Under the pieces are notes generated by a model that did no database searches, was not told where the DNA came from, and worked only from the letters and a program-made list of their open reading frames with translations. Of a stretch of DNA of 64,000 nucleotides, positions 3,438 to 55,901 are shown one piece after another. Made by a program: the position numbers and the translations under genes. How positions within the stretch are numbered: the first letter of the stretch is position 1; every line of letters begins with the position of its first letter. This DNA is from Ostrea edulis. Taxonomy: Eukaryota. Where the stretch lies: contig NC_079170.1 of the NCBI RefSeq assembly GCF_947568905.1, positions 85,126,001-85,190,000 on the forward strand. The letters run 5' to 3'.

Positions 3438-5861
3438 ATGACAAACCTGGTGATTTTCTGTGTAGCTTTTGTCGCATTTCTGACTTATTCTGAAGCCTGT
3501 ACATGTCTGTCTCAACACCCACAAACCCAATTCTGTAACTCGCAGTTCGGTATGTTACTTTCATTTTCAGTTCTAATAATCATTAACACCGGCTATTCCT
3601 ACCAGTCCTCGTGGGAACGTTTGAAGCAATATTATGATAAGTCCTTTTATATGCACTTGCCACTTTGTTTCCTGCACCTTTAGCTTGTTGTTCGGTTGTT
3701 TAAAAATGTCGGCAAATTTCTAATTGTTAAAGCAGAGTAATGTAGTAGTTTGCCATAACTCCCTTGTGATTTTCGATAATTATTGTAGAACTAACTTTTA
3801 CAAAGCCAAGTCATCCATCACACACTGATATTTGATTTCAGATGCAATCCACACATCTTTAATATCTAACGTTTGTTTCAATTTCTTCCACCAGTGGTTA
3901 AAGCTAAAGTCATTCGTCGGGAAACTGTTAACCGAGGACGAGAAGTTGTTTATAGTGTGAGGATTCTGAAGGATTTCAAGGTAAAATTTTCATCATTAAC
4001 ATTTGATGATAATTCAAGTTTTCAGACATGTTGCGCCCGTAGTTTTGTAAATGAAATATCAGTTACATAATGCAAACAGATACAAATGTTTTGTAATCAA
4101 CAACAGAGGAAAAACACCTGAAAATTACGTTAAGAATCAAACAAAATTCTAATTATTTCTTGAGAAGCTGTATTTGAATTTTACTTTTAGTGTATTGAAA
4201 ATGTGACTAAAACTTGATAATTAATTTAATGATATCTAATTTTCTTAAACTGATAATTTCTTGAATTGTATCATAAATAATTGATTTGTTTCACTATGGG
4301 GTTTAATCCATGTTTTTTTTTGGGGGGGGGGTTGTGTCAGTTCAAATTATTTTAAGCACTAACGTGTGGGTGGTGTCTGCTTTAGGCATATCATGTAGTG
4401 TGTAAACTAAGATGCATTGTTTCTCCCAAATACATATCATTATTAATATATTTGTCTTCTCTCTTTTAATACATTAACATCTGAAAATATTGTTTATATC
4501 TCTTAATATACGTGAACTTTGTTTTTATCTAACATTAGACTTTTACTGACAATGCGTGCTCTGCGGAGATTGTAAATCTTTTGAAATTTTGATTACTTTG
4601 AGGTTCAACAAATGTATGCAATTTGTTTCTACGTTTCAGGGTGACGGAACACGCTATTCCAATACACAGAAAATATATACCAGCACTTCATCTGCTAGTT
4701 GTGGATCATATTTCGAATTACAAAAAGAATACATCATATCTGGTAAATTGAATTTCATGCTTAAACCTTTCAAATGTTATATTTATCACATAGATTGAAG
4801 TCAGCATTTCGCAAATTCTATGGTCGTTATAACGATCTAGTTTGTCAATACAACCTATCATTGGGTCAAATGCCGTCTGACGTGTTTCATACCGATTGTT
4901 AGAGCGTTCTTGACACACTGATTTTGACTACGGATAACTCCGTTTACCTGGTCAGGATATAGGATTCACGGCGGGTGTGACCGGTCGACAGGGAATGCTT
5001 ACTCCTCCTAGGCACCCGATCCCACCTCTGGTATATCCAAGGGTCCGTGATTGTCCAACTATCTGTTTTGTATTGCTTGTAGGAGTTATGAGATTGATCA
5101 CTGTTCGTTATTCACCTTTCATGTTTTCAGGTTCTATTAATGGACAAAAATGGAATACAGGCCTTTGTTCCTGGAATACAAGGACATCTTTTCTCACCCA
5201 ATACCAAAGAATTGCTTTGGATCTTGATATCTATAAGAATAGTTGCAACTGCAAGGCAAGTTATTTTCTGACTGATAGTCAGGTTTTGAATCGAGGGAAT
5301 TGATACTATTTCGATAAATGTTTCAACATCACCACTAGATAATATTTATAGTACCAACGTATGAGTACAGAACATCTATGCTTACTGCTGTGGAATCAAA
5401 CAGAAGTAAACGTAGAATGTGAATGTAAAGGATACATTTCACCTCCCCCCCCTCCCCAAATTAATGTGAGCTGCAACGTTTTACATCGATATACTTTTCA
5501 AGAAATATTAAGGCGTTTCATGAAAATATTCCGGCATAAAGTGTCGCTGTTTGTTCTTTACATAATTTCTAAAAATCTGATTAATTTTTCAACATTAAGA
5601 TTTAACTTTATTAAGAATTTCTTACGTAAGGATATTCTGGAATTATGTTGAAGTATAATGTCACTGTTAAATTGTGAAATATTTCCATGTGTTCTTCTTC
5701 TACAGATTGTAGAATGTGGTTTTGGCGGAAGTCAATGTCCACAAGCAACGGGAGTGTCGTGCGTGATTCCATCCAGATCTGACGTGAACTGTTGGTATCA
5801 GAATAATTCTTGCAACCTCTCTCCATATGGATGTGCCTGGCATTCCCCTGCATGCGCTTAA
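3438..5861 (+). CDS. timp: TIMP paralog A1 (193 aa, 5 coding exons)
   Basis: Exons 3438-3549, 3895-3980, 4640-4742, 5131-5255, 5706-5861 join in frame (phases 1,0,1,0; 582 nt). Signal peptide MTNLVIFCVAFVAFLTYSEA is followed by CTC..HPQ..FCNS.FVVKAK, IYT...SCG, LCSW and SCNCK, then a Cys-rich C-domain (14 Cys in the mature protein). Intron 4 donor is GC (aag|gcaagt). Confidence 0.93.
4793..5122 (+). mobile_element. PLE family copy in TIMP A1 intron 3
   Basis: Matches the 3' 330 nt of the family and ends 8 nt before exon 4. Confidence 0.85.
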
Positions 5862-14487: not shown

Positions 14488-17400
14488 ATGACAAACCTGG
14501 TGATTTTCTGTGTAGTGTTTGTTGCGTACTTGGCTTATTCTGAAGCCTGTTCATGTCTGCCCGAACATCCACAAACAAAATTCTGTAACTCCCACTTTGG
14601 TATGTTACTTTCATTTTCAGTTCTATTAATTACTAAATTGTTCTCACACAGTTGATTCGCTGTACGCTTCATTTTCGTTCCCTTGGGTTTAATTATGACG
14701 TTGGTTTAAAATCGTGGTAAATGTTGCATTTACTAAAACCGTAACGCGAAATCATGCAGAATCCTGTCATTGCTCACTTGTGATTTTCCATAAATACTCT
14801 AGTAATAAATTTTACAAAACCGAGCCATCCATTACACAGTAATATTTGAACTCAGTTGTAATTTACTTTATTTGACTTTTTTCGACCAGTGGTTCAAGCG
14901 AAAATTCTTCGTCGAAAAACGATCAACAGAGGGCAAAACGTTGTATATACAGTGAGGGTACTGAAGGATTTCAAGGTAAAATTTTCGTAATTTAAGTTTT
15001 CATAAATACTGTACCGGTGTGGATGATTTGCCTGTTATATGATGAAAACACGTATTTTGTTTAATAACAGAAGAAACACTGATAAAAATTACGAAACGTA
15101 AATTACTTCTTCATAAGATGTATTTGAATTTTAGTGTATGTAGTATATTTAAAATATGACTGGAATTCAGTAATTGACTTATTCAATTGCAATATTGTTA
15201 AACTAGATAACTTATTGAATCAAATTATTATATTTGTTTTTGTTTGTTTTTGGTGTTTATATTCACCAGCTGGTATGTGATACCTCCTTTATTCAAACTG
15301 TGTTTTGTGTCGTATGCAAACTGATATTATGTTTTGTCAGGCTAAATGTACTTATTAAAGGACACATTTCATGTTTTCAAAGTATTACAAAGTTGTATGC
15401 ATTGGGTCTTCCTTATGCTTATAAATATTAATTCTAATTGTTCGTTCGCCGAAATACTGGGATATTTAACCACAATACGGACTTAAATCTAAGCCCCGAT
15501 TTCAAAAAGCCTAGTCAATAAGTTAGGTAGTCACGTGATACAGTGACGTCATATGCGACCTTCGTTGATCAACCTGTTGCGAAATTCTTAAGATATTTTT
15601 GAACACACGGGTTTTGGGGGGCCTACTTTATTTACCCTGGATAACTTTTATATCAATGTTGACAAATTCCCCGAACCTTGCGTGTTTTAGCCACCAGTTT
15701 ATACAAATAGTGATGTAAATACCATAATGTAGCGAGGAAAGCGAGTATGAAACGATTTGCGATTACGAGTAAATAATATTTACATGGGGTCACTGTCTAA
15801 ACACTATTTGTTATAATGTTATTCCTTTTAACATCTGTAATTAGCGTTGTTGATTTCTATTAATAAACAATGGAATTCTCATTTTGGAACATATAATTAT
15901 ATTACGATGTATCATTGACAACAGGGCCTTATATAAACTGTCACTGGTGCATTTCGAAAAGAAAAATGATCAACTTTATACTGCAAATCACAACATTTTG
16001 TTTTAATCAAAAAAATTTATTCATCATCTTTTCTTCCATCTACACGTTGTTAGGAAGTGGGAGCACGGCGTACTGCACGTATTGTTGTTACGTACAATGT
16101 ACGCGTTCATTGAAAAACAACTTAACGGATTATAGTTCAATTCAAAGTTACGAAAATACAATATTTCATTATTTATAATTGAAAGTTCAATTATTTTCAA
16201 TACTTTAATTTTGTTTATTTCTACTAGTTGGTAGAAACCGAGAGCACAAGGTATGCCTATATGTTGTTACAAGGTAAAGGTCAGCTGGTGCAAGTGTGAA
16301 TTGAACGGATAATGCTGTAGGTCCACGTGTAACAGTGTGTATCTTCGATAGAACTATATTTTCGCAGTTATCTACGTCTTTATCCAAATGCTTTTTTGAA
16401 AATATAAAGGGACAAATGCTACTGGTGTTTTTATGGCAAAGTCATTGTGCCGAAAAAATATATCCACGTCCTTTCCTTTTATACCTTCCTCCAAAAATTG
16501 AAGAAAACACTATCTAAATCCTTTCTATTGACAACTAAGTACACATTAAACGGCACAAAACACCCTAATGCAGAGTTATTAACAAACCATTAATGTGATA
16601 ATTGGTTTTTTTGGCCATTTAAATCTAATCTGTTTATGAAATGCCCAACAACTGTTTGCAAACCTTTTTGATCGAGGTCGCATATGACGTCACAGATAAT
16701 GGCGCGTAAAATTTCGAAGAAAATATGCATATCGCAAGATATGAATTCCATCGCTTTAAAACTCGAAAACTACGCAAACTGTTTCATTTAAAACACATGT
16801 AAAGTATTTTTTTGCATGAAATGAATTAATTTTGCTGAAAAAAATCAAAAAGTTTAGAAACATGCGATGTGTCTGTCCTTCAATAAATCTGTGATTTTTT
16901 ATATACACAGACATCTTAAACTGTTGTGTCTTAATATACCTGGTTTGTTTTATAACTAATAGTTATATTATTTTCATTGATAATATATTTCGGTGAATTA
17001 CTCTGCAGAGCTTGTGTTCCCATGTTTAGAAGAAATAAAGCTTTATCTAATCTTATCTAATTTTATACCTAAGATCAAATTGAGGGTCACCAAACATATG
17101 CATATTGTTAATATGTTACAGGATAATGGAGGACGATATTCTAGAAAACAAAAAATCTACACCAGTGCTAGTTGTGGCTCCTACTTCGAATTAAAAAAAG
17201 AATACATCATATCTGGTAAACTGAATTCCTGGTTTAAATCTTTCAAATGATTTATCTATCACAATGTATTATTACCCTTCCATTGCTGTCACGAAAAACA
17301 AATCATTGTGATAAACAATAACAAAGCAAAATTATGAATTTGATTTTAGAATGATATTTCATGCTCAGCTTAAAGTTTCAGTTATTTTGTTTCAGGTTCC

Positions 17401-23184: not shown

Positions 23185-25983
23185 ATGACAAACCTAGTGA
23201 TTTTATGTGTAGCTCTTGTTGCGTTCTTGGCTTATTCGGAAGCCTGTAGATGTCAGTCTCAACACCCACAAACACAATTCTGTAACTCGCAGTTTGGTAT
23301 GTTACTTTCATCTTCAGTTCTATTAATCACTAAATTGTCCCCACACCTTTGATCGCGTTACATACTTCATTGTCTTCCCCTTGACTTTAATTGTGTCGTT
23401 GTTTTAAAATTCCGGAATATGTTAAATGAGAAATTATCAAAACCGTAACGCGAAATCATGCAATATCTTCCTATTGCTCGCTTGTGATTTTTAATTTACA
23501 AAAACCAAGTCATCACTAACACAGTTATATTTAATTTCAGTGGTAATTCATCTTATTTATCTGATATTTTTCGTACAGTGGTTCAAGCGAAAGTCCTTCG
23601 TCGAAGAACGATCAACAGAGGAAGAAATGTCGTGTATACTGTAACGATTCTGAGGGATTTCAAGGTATGTATTTCATATTAAGATTCCAGAAATGTTATA
23701 CCGATATACGTGTAACCAATTGCCTGTTATGTGATGAAAAAACGCATTTTGATTAAGAACATTTTAATTGTTTCTTCGTAAGATGTTTTAACATTCTAGC
23801 ATTCCCAATATATCAAGGAGTCCGTGTTTACCAACCTGGCTATTTTGTATTCCTTGTAGAGGTTATGAGATTGATCACTGTTCGTTATCCTCACCTTTCA
23901 TTGAAAATATGATGAGAATTTAAGAATTCGACCAACCACATCAAAATGTATTGAACTTAATTAGTATACTGGTTTTTGTTCCTTAGTGGTGTGCAAATCG
24001 TAATGTATATGTTCTAATCTAAATTATTTATTACATTTACCAACTAGCGTGTGGTGTCTACATTAGCCCAGCTGCGTCTTTTGTGGTGTGCAAACTGTGA
24101 TATGTTTCTCTAAAATACATGTACTTATAATGTATCTGTAATGTTTATTTTGATGCATGAACCTCTGAAAATGTGTCTGTGTCTTAAAATATGTTAAGTT
24201 TCTTTTATAAACAATAGTTACATATGTTTTCATAATACTGTATGTCATTCAAAAGCCCCCCCCCCCCCCTTGAGATTATATTTTCCCATGTATTGAAGCA
24301 TTCACCGCATGGATCTTATTTTGTCTCGGATCATTTTGAGGTTTCCGAAGTATCAGTACTTTGTTGATATTTTCCAGGATGACAGACGACGATATTCTAC
24401 AACACAGAATATCTACACCAGATCTTCTTCTGCTAGTTGTGGTTCCAACTTCAATTTAGAAAAGGAATACATCATATCTGGTAAACAGAGGTTCTTCTTT
24501 AAACCTTGGAAATGTTTTTATCGTTTATTTTGTTTAATTTTTCCCATGACAATGTCTATTATGTAAACTTATACGGTACCAATTTTGATGCACCAGATGC
24601 GCATTTCGACAAATACTATATCTTCAGTGATGCTCAACCGAAATTTTTGAAATCCGAAATAACAATGAAGTGTTAGAGATATTATAGGGAAAACAGTGTT
24701 CAAAATAAAGTGGAGTCAAATTTGTTTAAGGATAAGAGCTATGCGTGATGGAGATAATCCTTAATTTTGAAATGAATTTCTTAATTTTATCACAGCAGTT
24801 AAATATACATCCGTATTTTCAAGCTAGTAACGAAGTACTTAGCTACTGAGCTGTAGAGACCCTCGGGGACTAACAATCCACCAGCTGAGGCCTCGACCCA
24901 GGGTTTATAATGTAAAACTTATACGGTACCAATTTTGATGCACCAGATGCGCATTTCGACAAATAATGTCTCTTCAGTGATGCTCAACCGAAATGTTTGA
25001 AATCCCAAATAACAATGAAGTTTTAGATCTAAAGCAATTAAAGCAGAAATTCATGAAATGGATTTTAGATTGTACTTCTCTGCTTTAATTAATGGTTTTA
25101 TTTTATTTTTTCAGGTTCCATTAATGGACAAAAATGGAATACAGACCTGTGTTCGTGGAATACTAGAACATCTTCTCTCTCTCAATACCAAAGGACTGCA
25201 TTGGATCGTGGTATCTATAAGAACAGTTGCAGCTGCAAGGCAAGTTATTTCCTGACTGATGGTTGCATATATATTCATAAAACATGTCGGGTTTTATATC
25301 ACGGTGAATACAGTCGATCCTTTAGGACGTATGAGTACAGTAAATCTATTGTGACGTATGGATAGACTAAATCTATTGTAACGTATAAGTACAGTAAATC
25401 TATTATGACGTATGAGTATAGTAAATATATTATGACGTCTGTGAATTCCAACAGAAGAAAACGTAGAACGTTGACATAAAAGATTTATTTCAATTTTTAA
25501 AAAATAAGTAAATGTAGACTACAACGCTTAACACCGGCATATTTTTCAATAAATACTAACGCACCTCATAAAATTATCGCGGCTTAAGGTTTCCGTATAT
25601 ATCTTCAAAAACTTAATTCATTTCTCAAAGTTATGCTTTAACTTTATAAGAAAATTCTTACATAAGGATATCCTGAAATTAAGATGAAATTCAATTTCAC
25701 TGTTAAACTTTGAATTATATCCCTGTCCTTTTCTTCTACAGATTGTAGAATGTAGAATTATATCCCTGTCCTTTTCTTCTACAGATTGTAGAATGTAGAA
25801 TTATATCCCTGTCCTTTTCTTCTACAGATTGTAGAATGTAGCTTTGGCGGAAGTCAATGTCCGCAACCAACCGGAGGATCTTGCGTGATTCGATCCCCAG
25901 CTGATGTCAATTGTTGGTATCAGAATAATTCCTGCATGATGTCTACGTATGGATGTGCCTGGCATTCCCCTGCCTGCGCATAA
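23185..25983 (+). CDS. timp: TIMP paralog A3 (193 aa if the most distal intron 4 acceptor is used)
   Basis: Exons 23185-23296, 23579-23664, 24378-24480, 25115-25239, 25828-25983 are in frame. Mature N-terminus CRCQSQHPQ. GC donor at 25240. The intron 4 acceptor region is triplicated (25712-25840). Confidence 0.88.
24590..24633 (-). ncRNA. Type I hammerhead ribozyme, second copy with degenerate stem II
   Basis: Same as 24940-24983, but the stem II 5' strand is UAUA instead of GACA, so the G-C closing pair is lost. Confidence 0.75.
24940..24983 (-). ncRNA. Minimal type I hammerhead ribozyme (canonical core)
   Basis: The - strand reads GCAUCA CUGAAGA GACA UUAUU UGUC GAAA UGCGCA UC|UGGUGC: stem I 6 bp, stem II 4 bp, palindromic stem III, AUC cleavage triplet. 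Confidence 0.9.
25326..25440 (+). repeat. 27-bp minisatellite (~4.3 units) in A3 intron 4
   Basis: Unit GACGTATGAGTACAGTAAATCTATTGT. A1 has a single related copy at ~5356. Confidence 0.85.
25712..25840 (+). repeat. Perfect 43-bp x3 tandem repeat spanning the A3 intron 4/exon 5 junction
   Basis: Unit GAATTATATCCCTGTCCTTTTCTTCTACAGATTGTAGAATGTA at 25712, 25755 and 25798. Confidence 0.95.
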
Positions 25984-35160: not shown

Positions 35161-37570
35161 ATGAAGTTGCTCGCTGGTTGTTGCTTGCTCGCCATTGCAT
35201 TGTTTCATTATTCAGATGCCGGTTGTTCTTGTCCACTGCAACATCCTCAGCAAGCGCTCTGTGATGACAACGCCTTTGGTAAGTCCATGATAAGGAATTA
35301 ATTTCGACTTAATACAATTATCCCTTTCGTTCAATAGACAAACCAGCACTTTGTATCATCTTAGATATGTATGGAAATTGGCATCTCCTTTTATCAAACT
35401 CTTCGAACTAAAAGCAGATTTAGAAGTTTTAAGAAATGAAATCCAAGTTTTCAATTATTCAGTCACAAAATTATATCGTATATCATGTCATCTACGTCTT
35501 TAGTTGAAATTACATATCCGTTGATAGATATTAAGTAACTGATGTAATGAATTATTTTTACAGTACTGAAGGTCAAAATACTAAACAGAAAGACGTTGTC
35601 AGGTGGACCAAGATCAGAACGCCGCGTTTATAAAGTTAAAGTCTTAAGGGATTACAAGGTATCGCAATTTTAAACACCAAAATATCAATGATTTACTGTA
35701 TGCAAGGTGAAGATAACGAACAGTGATCAATCTCATAACTCCTACAAGCAATACAAAATAGATAGTTGGGCAAACACGGACCCCTGATTAGATTTCATTG
35801 TGTTTCATATATTCATAATGTTGTTATTTTGCAGAACACATTTGACCCTATTCACGGAAATGAAAAGATCTACACGAGTAGTTCAAAGGAACCCTGTGGA
35901 GTATATTTCAGTAGGAAAGTAACATACATCATAAGTGGTAAGGTTTACCTCACAATTCTGGTCATCAAAACAAGTAACAAAAATAATAAAACTTTTAAAG
36001 AGGAACGTCACTGTGTTAATACCATACTGATAGTATCGTGTCTCCTTTTACTGTTTTCATTTATTTATTCGCTTTTTATGGTGGTTGCGTTATCTGGGTG
36101 ATTTATTTCTTTGAGGTTGTTACACTTTTCATGGATTTTCATATCGCCTTCAATGTGTGATATAAAGGGCCTCCGTGGTCGAGTGGTTAGAGCATTGTAC
36201 TCAAAATCACACGGCCCCTCACCGCTGGTTGGTGTGAGTTTCAATCCCGCTCGCGCCGGTAAGTGAGAAAGTTTCCCTGTTCACTTTCGGAAGGTCGGTG
36301 ATCTCTTCACTGGTACATTGTATCAGAGTTTTCTCTTCCACCAATAAAAACTAGGGCCACCAGATAACTTAAACTTTGTTGAGTGTGACGAAAAACAGCT
36401 ACACTATCAATCAATCAATGTGTGATAAATTCTAATTGCAGGATATAAATCTGGCGGGAGGTTTGTGACAAGTTCCTGTTTCTGGAACCAGAAGATCTGC
36501 ACCGTCACGCGCTTCCAGAAATTCGCTCTCAAGACTGGTCTATACAAATCCAACTGTCAGTGCAAGGTAATTTGTTGTTACCTTATTATTTTCTTAATAC
36601 CCTAACTGTCAGTGCGAGCTAAATTGTTTTTACCTTATTATTTTCTTAATGCTAAAGAATACCCATTCATCCATTTTTTTTTAGAATTTGTAATCTGCGA
36701 TTAAAGTACTATTGACTGTCATTTTGATGTCGAACATTTTTGTTGTGATATGAAAGTCTTGTTATTGGTATTTGTGTTAAAACGAAAATCTATTCAGGGG
36801 CTCTACATAAAGAAAAGTTACATTATCGTCTTCCCGCACAGATGTTTATTTTTAATGTATATGATGCTAACTTAGTTTTAATTTCATCAATGGTTATGAT
36901 TAGAGTTATATACAATACTGCCATAATATGACATTTTTATTACAAAAGAAAATTTGCAGATTTAGAGCTAATGATGCTTTGGGTAAGATTTATTGTATGG
37001 TAAGAACTCTAGAGGATGTGATAATAGTACCATTTTTTTAATCGAGTCCTCACTACCATCGTGTTCGAGATTGTGCGGTTTGACTATATCTGTATTGTAC
37101 AGTGTACCATTACAAGGGGGTAACTACTAGTATAATTACAAGTACCATCTTAATTCAAATCAAATGTGATGTGCTACTTTGTTAAAATTATTTTGTTCTA
37201 GATCAAAGACTGTACAGACGGATTCTGCAATCCCCCAACGAGAGAAGACTGTGTCATCAAATCAAACAGAGGCTGCTTCCTAGAAAAGAACGCATGCGTC
37301 CAGAAATCAAACTATGGCTCCCTGCATTGTGGCTGGAAATCAAATACTTGTGACTCGGATTCCACCTTTAAAGTCAACAAGCAGGTTGTTTATGAACCCA
37401 CGGAAACCGAGGTTCTAAATCATAAGACCTTCGAACAGACTGTACACAGATTGTTTGATCCACCTGCGAAACCAGACCATGGGCCAGAGTACAACCACGC
37501 AGCACCAGGGCCGTACACAACACACGTCCAAAAAATCGTCGATCATGTCGGGGGAAATGTTGGCCACTAA
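35161..37570 (+). CDS. timp: TIMP paralog B1 (269 aa, divergent, long C-terminal extension)
   Basis: Exons 35161-35278, 35564-35658, 35835-35937, 36442-36566, 37202-37570 are in frame with the same intron phases as the A genes, and all introns are GT-AG. MKLLAGCCLLAIALFHYSDA-GCSCPLQHPQQALC, IYT...PCG, NCQCK. Exon 5 encodes 122 aa. TATAAAA at 35081. Confidence 0.9.
36167..36418 (+). mobile_element. tRNA-derived SINE (family 2) in B1 intron 3; paralogous copy at 45949-46204 in B2
   Basis: A-box GTGGTCGAGTGG, B-box GAGTTTCAATCC, (CAAT)n tail, and a 13-bp TSD TCAATGTGTGATA (36150-36162 and 36415-36427). Confidence 0.8.
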
Positions 37571-55076: not shown

Positions 55077-55901
55077 ATGAGAACCGTGGCGATTGTCTCG
55101 GCAGCGTTTGCTGCGATTTTTGCCTATTCCGAAGCATGTACCTGTTGGTCTCAACATCCCCAAACTCATTTCTGTAACTCCGATTTTGGTATGTTGTATT
55201 TTTTGTTTCATTTTTAATACTAACAATCACCAATCCATCACTCTCTGTTTTCTTTTCTCCCGTTGAATTTTACACTTGCGATACACTGTTTCTGGATATG
55301 AAACATGTCCTTGTAGGTATTTTTAACACTAACACATCCAGTATCTTGCAGTTGTTCACTTTTGACTTTCCATAATTTCTACATTATTCCGGAATGATTC
55401 AATAATTGTCATATTTTACGCAATATCATTTATATCTAATTTTGGTTTATCTTCTTCAGTATCGAACTTTTATTTCATCTGTTCTCAACAGTTATCCGGG
55501 CAGCGATCCTTAATCGAAAAACAGTCAACATGGAAATTGTATATACAGTGAGGATACTGAAAGAGTTCAAGGTAATAATCTTATCATGATATTTGATAAT
55601 CAGATAACAAATAGAAATCCTACAAAAGCATANNNNNNNNNNNNNNNNNNNNNNNNNNNNNNNNNNNNNNNNNNNNNNNNNNNNNNNNNNNNNNNNNNNN
55701 NNNNNNNNNNNNNNNNNNNNNNNNNNNNNNNNNNNNNNNNNNNNNNNNNNNNNNNNNNNNNNNNNNNNNNNNNNGTAGCATTTTCCTTGCATTTTTTTGT
55801 AAAAAAAGAAATCATATCATGTTAATGACGGAGCAGAAAAGAAAGAGGTCCTTTTGGAATAATATTTTGCTGCTATGTCATTTTGTTGTTTTTCTACGTT
55901 T

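Follow-up and report, generated by a model that had tools for sequence, protein, structure and literature searches.

What becomes of a TIMP when its first cysteine is no longer its first residue? In canonical TIMPs, the catalytic zinc of matrix metalloproteinases (MMPs) is chelated by the free alpha-amino group and the carbonyl of Cys1. The question is raised by two genes, B1 and B2, in a 64,000-nucleotide stretch of Ostrea edulis chromosome DNA (contig NC_079170.1, positions 85,126,001 to 85,190,000; the window, to which the positions below refer). A six-frame scan for C-x-C...HP revealed seven tandem TIMP-like genes in the window, all on the + strand, with the first Cys codons of their exon 1s at 3498, 14548, 23245, 35224, 41078, 43805 and 55137. 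Codon read-out of A1, A2, A3, a stop-bearing copy and C (first Cys at 3498, 14548, 23245, 41078 and 55137) gave Y-S-E-A directly before C-x-C, whereas B1 (35224) and B2 (43805) read Y-S-D-A-G before C-S-C, encoded by GAT GCC GGT TGT TCT TGT. The original prediction had drawn attention to this difference at 35161-35278, which is exactly exon 1 of B1, and the codons bear it out. We favour a reading in which mature B-type proteins would begin with Gly-Cys (x-x-Glu-Cys in Saccostrea), would inhibit MMPs poorly by the canonical mechanism and would have been retargeted; taken jointly, we hold these points to be moderately probable. Where the precursors are cut, that MMP inhibition is lost and that the role is new are inferences from sequence, whereas the sequence itself, its occurrence in other individuals, its conservation in four species, membership of the TIMP family and purifying selection are shown.

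B1 (35161-37570) and B2 (43742-48958) each comprise five exons, with GT-AG introns in the same phases and with reading frames and all splice sites intact; B1 encodes 269 residues. Our hand models equal the NCBI proteins XP_048740556.2 ('metalloproteinase inhibitor 3-like [Ostrea edulis]'; B1, over the whole length) and XP_048741235.2 (B2, identical). With B1 exon 5 as query, a large representative search returned a 100% match to residues 148-269 of XP_048740556.2. The features of both genes are as follows.

35161..35278, + strand: B1 exon 1, ATG to GT donor, ending in phase 1; equals the N-terminus of XP_048740556.2
35161..35278, + strand: content of B1 exon 1, signal peptide MKLLAGCCLLAIALFHYSDA, extra Gly21, then C22-S-C24-PLQHPQQALC34
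35218..35226, + strand: B1 codons GCC GGT TGT (Ala20-Gly21-Cys22), with the predicted signal-peptidase cut between Ala20 and Gly21
35221-35223, + strand: B1 Gly codon GGT, from the codon read-out
35564..35658, + strand: B1 exon 2, with AG/GT borders
35835..35937, + strand: B1 exon 3, holding S-K-E-P-C92 (Lys89-Glu90-Pro91-Cys92 at 35886-35897), the loop before the Cys70/72 equivalent
36442..36566, + strand: B1 exon 4, with Cys125 (TGC at 36498-36500), the extra cysteine that is found in B and not in A-type paralogues
37202..37570, + strand: B1 exon 5, C-terminal TIMP subdomain (7 Cys), His/Pro-rich tail of ~70 residues, stop codon
43742..43859, + strand: B2 exon 1, ...YSDA-G-CSC, Gly codon GGT at 43802-43804; equals XP_048741235.2
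45438..45532, + strand: B2 exon 2, from the gene model
45624..45726, + strand: B2 exon 3, holding SKEPC
47819..47943, + strand: B2 exon 4, holding the extra Cys125
48590..48958, + strand: B2 exon 5, tail and stop codon

The extra glycine in B1 and B2 is real. Both genes carry the same GGT codon, and a search of the O. edulis genome found no further B-type exon 1. B1 exon 1 is also spanned by DNA contigs of four other public runs (X1-X4) from two studies. In X1-X3 the Gly codon is unchanged: each contig difference is accounted for elsewhere (35130, 35148, 35177, 35208, 35237/8, 35271/2, 35329/34/44), and exon 1 contains no insertion or deletion. In X4, one contig difference was not located, and the Gly codon was not shown to differ. 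The B2 codon, the independent DNA contigs, the identity of hand models and NCBI proteins, and orthologues that carry their extension in an uninterrupted exon 1 (see below) together rule out an assembly or annotation artefact. A lesion private to the lineage is rejected as well, extensions being present in three other oyster species.

The resequenced contigs also contained differences towards the B2 sequence. At 35177, spanning contigs of all four runs had G>C, by which Gly6 of the B1 signal peptide becomes Ala (Gly6Ala) as in B2; B2-like changes were further seen at 35237/8 in two of the four runs and at 35271/2 in one. They may reflect a polymorphism or gene conversion between the two genes, or B2 contigs may have been placed on B1.

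By profile and alignment, B1 and B2 are members of the TIMP family. The Pfam TIMP profile (PF00965 / MEROPS I35) matched residues 22-184 with 73.8 bits in B1 and 80.8 bits in B2 (cut-off 23.1); single B1 exons scored below the cut-off and were collinear with the profile. The Pfam NTR profile (PF01759) exceeded its cut-off in the Saccostrea orthologues and stayed below it in B1 and B2. Using phmmer, the best solved-structure matches of XP_048740556.2 were the TIMP-2 chains 1bqq_T (E 3.9e-10) and 1br9_A. Precursor Cys22 aligned to residue 1 of mature TIMP-2, which makes Gly21 position -1 of a TIMP. In the same alignment C22, C24, C34, C92, C118, C144, C146, C151, C156 and C164 fell on TIMP-2 Cys1, 3, 13, 72, 101, 126, 128, 133, 138 and 146, so that C92 corresponds to Cys72, and all ten are invariant in the four oyster species compared (O. 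edulis, Magallana gigas, Saccostrea echinata and S. cucullata, from three genera). B1 and B2 thus have the N-terminal C-x-C as well as the cysteines that in known TIMPs form the conserved disulfides (Cys1-Cys70, Cys3-Cys99, Cys13-Cys124 and those of the C-domain). Gene structure agrees: of 142 molluscan TIMP genes surveyed, 132 had five exons (PMC10755359), and the five-exon structure of B1 and B2 matches typical mollusc and vertebrate TIMP genes.

We then compared the junction between signal peptide and Cys1 throughout the O. edulis TIMP genes; this survey of N-termini covers one genome plus the B clade. Matches to the IUPAC pattern C-x-C..HPQ across the whole genome (289) were below the reversed-pattern control and uninformative. 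We used instead a Pfam TIMP profile scan of the genome, after which six exon 1s outside the window were fetched. The intact comparison exons within the window are given below, with a slash before Cys1.

3438..3554, + strand: A1 exon 1, ...LTYSEA/CTC, canonical junction
14488..14604, + strand: A2 exon 1, ...LAYSEA/CSC
23185..23301, + strand: A3 exon 1, ...LAYSEA/CRC
55077..55193, + strand: C exon 1, ...FAYSEA/CTC

Five exon 1s from outside the window read VSEA/CKC, YANA/CKC, YSEA/CLC, LSSA/CTC and VSEA/CKC. Thus, in nine of the ten other O. edulis TIMP exon 1s (four intact in the window, five outside), Ser/Ala-x-Ala stands flush with Cys1. The tenth has no start codon and likewise no residue between the site and Cys1. 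Since exon 1s inside and outside the window agree, the site of the family is small-x-Ala directly before Cys1, and an insertion of Gly at this very point is not a matter of chance. The tenth stretch (L042, G000:C7:85041930-85042330) lies ~84 kb before the window, reads ...ISDV-CIC-VSCHPQEQFC and is probably a fragment or pseudogene.

Beyond O. edulis, searches with full-length XP_048740556.2 and with a four-sequence profile returned the B clade only. M. gigas (XP_011421474.2) and M. angulata read ...CCAES-G-CSC, S. echinata YSEA-IKE-CKC and S. cucullata YSEA-KSE-CKC. In each genome a single exon 1 encodes the extension without interruption, and the phase-1 donor at its end is the same. The Crassostrea/Magallana extension was found in an intron-less transcript contig of 1083 nt as well; that is, this orthologue is transcribed and spliced. 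Because orthologues in three other species carry extensions, the extended N-terminus is a property of the clade and not an accident of O. edulis. Given the predicted cut, the residue before Cys1 is Gly in Ostrea and probably in Magallana, and one to three residues precede it in Saccostrea.

The clade shares further characters. Directly before the Cys70 equivalent, all members have S-K/H/R/Q-E-P-C, in which E90-P91-C92 is invariant, versus S-A-S-C in the A and C paralogues; the contrast of SKEPC with SSASC had been part of the original prediction and extends to the whole clade. The extra Cys125 (Q-K-I-C-T) is invariant in the clade and absent from A-type proteins. M. gigas has 16 cysteines in the mature protein, against 15 in Ostrea and in each of the two Saccostrea species. 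All members end in a basic tail rich in His and Pro, which is duplicated in Magallana, where the M. gigas orthologue has two copies of the His-rich unit. Part of the B1 tail (37484-37561, exon 5 residues 95-120, PGPY..HV..DHV) matched 11 separate stretches of a 1939-residue ENA protein, P0002 (E 8e-14). The tail unit thus exists elsewhere as a tandem repeat.

Where would signal peptidase cut these precursors? The site was judged by the (-3,-1) rule, a table of P3 and P1 residues and comparison with paralogues and orthologues. B proteins keep the S-x-A site of the family, as S-D-A, with one codon added behind it. A cut after Ala20 places Ser at P3 and Ala at P1, as in the paralogues, and is the only option with Ser and Ala at these positions. 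We consider an extended mature N-terminus of B-type proteins likely, and the mature O. edulis protein would most likely start with Gly-Cys-Ser-Cys. On this prediction, Cys1 would not be the first mature residue and its alpha-amino group would not be free.

The strongest competitor is an ordinary TIMP: the cut would fall after Gly21 (Gly23 in Magallana), the glycine would only lengthen the c-region of the signal peptide, and a mature protein with Cys1 in front would be a normal MMP inhibitor. Gly is a common and acceptable P1 residue of signal peptides, and C-x-C, HPQ and the disulfide cysteines are all intact in B. However, a cut between Gly21 and Cys22 would put Asp at P3 in Ostrea, and the corresponding cut in Magallana would put Glu there, into an S3 pocket that in the eukaryotic enzyme is described, like S1, as shallow and hydrophobic (PMC13385932). 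The better S-D-A site, used by the paralogues, lies just one residue upstream. Exposing Cys1 in either Saccostrea species requires Glu at P1, which the (-3,-1) rule forbids, so that such a cut is impossible there. The earlier claim that the rule favours cleavage after Ala is hence supported by the P3 and P1 residues and by the paralogues, and strengthened by the Saccostrea glutamates. We regard an ordinary TIMP as improbable.

Alternatively, the protein might be secreted as a latent inhibitor, its extension serving as a very short pro-segment until an aminopeptidase or some other protease trims it off and uncovers Cys1. Such a device would fit an extension joined to an intact TIMP scaffold under purifying selection. 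But genera differ in how long the extension is and which residues it has (G; IKE; KSE), and it shows no conserved processing motif, dibasic or of another recognisable kind, which makes the aminopeptidase activation suggested by the original prediction unlikely. To our knowledge, TIMPs offer no precedent for activation by N-terminal trimming, and we found none in the TIMP literature examined. Our estimate for this explanation is lower still than for the ordinary TIMP.

Substitution patterns indicate that the B clade is under purifying selection. Between Ostrea and Magallana, the TIMP domain gave pN 0.149 and pS 0.744 (saturated), that is, a pN/pS of about 0.2. B1 and B2 differ with an omega of ~0.4 in the domain and ~0.85 in the tail, values that derive from few substitutions. 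Positions -1, 2, 4 and 5 belong to the strand that reaches into the protease cleft, and each of them varies among the four species, while 63.5% of the domain columns are invariant; these few sites mildly suggest that the cleft-entering strand is less constrained than the scaffold. It is highly improbable that the B pair is a recent, redundant duplication on its way to becoming pseudogenes, with the Gly insertion as a neutral lesion: the 21-22 non-synonymous and 8-11 synonymous changes between them, the omega of their tails and the stop-bearing neighbouring paralogue would fit decay, but both genes have intact frames and splice sites, the extended subfamily occurs in four species of three genera at the low pN/pS given above with all cysteines kept, and the Crassostrea/Magallana orthologue is transcribed and spliced.

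What a residue before Cys1 does to a TIMP is known from engineered proteins. Inhibition of MMPs drops severely once the N-terminus is blocked or extended (PMC3003256). With a single Ala added, [-1A]N-TIMP-3 inhibited MMP-1 with a Ki of 800 nM (versus 1.7 nM for wild type), MMP-2 with 970 nM (versus 2.7 nM) and MMP-3 with >1000 nM (versus 53.6 nM), while the Ki values were 33.9 nM for ADAM17 (versus 13.7 nM), 22.2 nM for ADAMTS-4 (versus 1.8 nM) and 1.7 nM for ADAMTS-5 (versus 0.5 nM; PMC3003256). An N-blocked Gly variant of N-TIMP-3 was weaker, at 465 nM for ADAM17, 107 nM for ADAMTS-4 and 118 nM for ADAMTS-5 (PMC3003256). Consequently, the original statement that a one-residue extension abolishes inhibition stands for MMPs and falls for ADAM17, ADAMTS-4 and ADAMTS-5. 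Its corollary, that B proteins are catalytically silent, is unproven and does not follow, because the extension costs [-1A]N-TIMP-3 its MMP inhibition but not that of ADAM17 and the ADAMTS enzymes.

We therefore propose the following picture for the reading that we favour. B1 and B2 are the two O. edulis representatives of a TIMP subfamily of the Ostreidae, whose secreted proteins have two domains and carry one to three extra residues between the predicted signal-peptidase site (S-D/E-A; in Magallana A-E-S) and C-x-C. Since the Cys1 amine would then be locked in a peptide bond, poor inhibition of MMPs is predicted. The remainder of the domain is kept by purifying selection, and the clade has fixed Glu-Pro before the Cys70 equivalent, Cys125 and the basic His/Pro-rich tail. 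Such a subfamily would be retargeted rather than inactivated, yielding a TIMP-fold binding protein independent of chelation by Cys1. It may be selective for non-MMP metzincins, as [-1A]TIMP-3 is, or act as a matrix- or metal-associated protein. More tentatively, the B-type proteins could be a natural 'reactive-site-edited' TIMP, nature's [-1A]TIMP-3, kept since before Ostrea, Magallana and Saccostrea split, in which extension and Glu-Pro together switch the target from MMPs to ADAM, ADAMTS or astacin-like enzymes. B-type proteins might also block zinc in a mode that does without the Cys1 amine, for example through the carboxylate of the conserved Glu90.

Several points weigh against this picture or soften it. 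A minority of cuts may fall between Gly21 and Cys22 in Ostrea and at the same place in Magallana, Gly being acceptable at P1, and the site assigned to B derives from the rule and the paralogue comparison. The fold of the B proteins and any pairing of Cys125 are likewise proposed from alignment only; AlphaFold2 on a 7-sequence alignment gave a mean pLDDT of 34.3 and a pTM of 0.25, too low for use. An 'unpaired Cys' is not universal in the clade, given the even number in M. gigas. Positions 2 and 4 vary among canonical TIMP paralogues too, so that variability in the cleft strand is weak evidence, as are the B1-B2 omega values for constraint since the duplication. In the public runs searched for the B1 stretch, no RNA run matched, only the four DNA runs, and this search gave no transcript or protein support for B1 or B2 in O. 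edulis.

How do the B proteins relate to known systems? Like vertebrate TIMP-2 and TIMP-3, they have a signal peptide, a C-x-C...HPQ N-terminus, two domains, aligned cysteines and five exons. Unlike these, they would carry one to three residues before Cys1 after the predicted cut, have Glu-Pro instead of Ser/Ala-Val/Leu before Cys70/72, and possess three cysteines beyond the canonical twelve (of which Cys125 is clade-specific) as well as the tail of ~70 residues. Also comparable are the engineered [-1A] and [-2A]N-TIMP-3 (Lim et al. 2010, PMC3003256), which have an extension of one or two residues before Cys1, and of which the B type looks like a natural counterpart. These are, however, laboratory mutants of human TIMP-3 extended with Ala, and nanomolar ADAM17 or ADAMTS inhibition coupled with loss of MMP inhibition is known for these human mutants only.

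Among bivalve proteins, the scallop byssal Sbp8-1 has been called an 'atypical TIMP', and a matrix or cross-linking role has been suggested for it in place of protease inhibition (PMC5975577). It resembles B in its bivalve TIMP fold, extra cysteines and basic character, but it is the C-terminal domain that holds its extra cysteines, and the sections consulted mention no insertion in front of Cys1 (PMC5975577). Sequence searches with the B protein and the B profile did not find Sbp8-1, which is thus not a B orthologue. Its published lack of inhibitory activity was measured on an N-terminal Trx fusion (PMC5975577); a tag of this kind would block a canonical TIMP on its own, and an intrinsic loss of inhibition does not follow from the measurement. 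The molluscan 'pseudo TIMPs' (Ma et al. 2023, PMC10755359) are, like B, copies from bivalve expansions with altered N-terminal domains. There, however, 'pseudo' denotes the lack of a SMART NTR match, whereas B matches Pfam TIMP and the Saccostrea orthologues also match Pfam NTR; that article does not discuss residues between signal peptide and Cys1 and mentions neither the C-x-C motif nor Cys1. Finally, internal NTR modules (PCOLCE/PCPE, netrins, complement C3/4/5, sFRPs) use the same fold without a free N-terminal cysteine (PMC2871463), but they are embedded in multidomain proteins, while B is a stand-alone two-domain TIMP with a very short extension.

The surroundings of both genes yielded some additional observations. 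B2 intron 1 (43860-45437, ~1.6 kb) and intron 3 (45727-47818, ~2.1 kb) are longer than their B1 counterparts (35279-35563, 0.29 kb; 35938-36441, 0.5 kb), presumably through repeat insertions after the duplication. In B1, stretches of introns 2 and 3 (35637-35818 and 36092-36455) are very high-copy repeats, with contig depths that sum to 1e5 to 1e7 in each of the four DNA runs. DNA contigs showed many joints that go back on themselves around 35700-35745 in B1 intron 2, and 36165-36260 in intron 3 has, by eye, a tRNA-derived (SINE-like) appearance. The TIMP copy between B1 and B2 (41015-42571) has an in-frame stop within the HPQ motif of its exon 1 (CTCWPQHP-stop-T) and is probably a pseudogene.

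Bivalve TIMP expansions, 'pseudo TIMPs' and Sbp8-1 are already on record; an extension before Cys1 in a natural subfamily would be the new part. Literature searches by the accessions of these proteins, and for His-rich TIMPs of oysters, found no mention of the accessions and no work on this subfamily. As far as we know, N-terminally extended TIMPs have so far been laboratory constructs, some of them developed as aggrecanase-selective therapeutics. TIMP inhibition centres on the free amine of Cys1, and here a natural subfamily predicted to cover it has been kept, under purifying selection, while three oyster genera diverged. It offers a ready-made test of how the TIMP scaffold may be retargeted. 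For annotation, the name 'metalloproteinase inhibitor 3-like' should not be taken to imply MMP inhibition by the B genes. B1, B2 and their orthologues are instead candidates for roles outside MMP inhibition, such as shell or matrix assembly, immunity or metal handling. Pteriomorphia bivalves possess up to 28 TIMP genes (PMC10755359), and the extended subfamily would provide a handle on why they keep so many.

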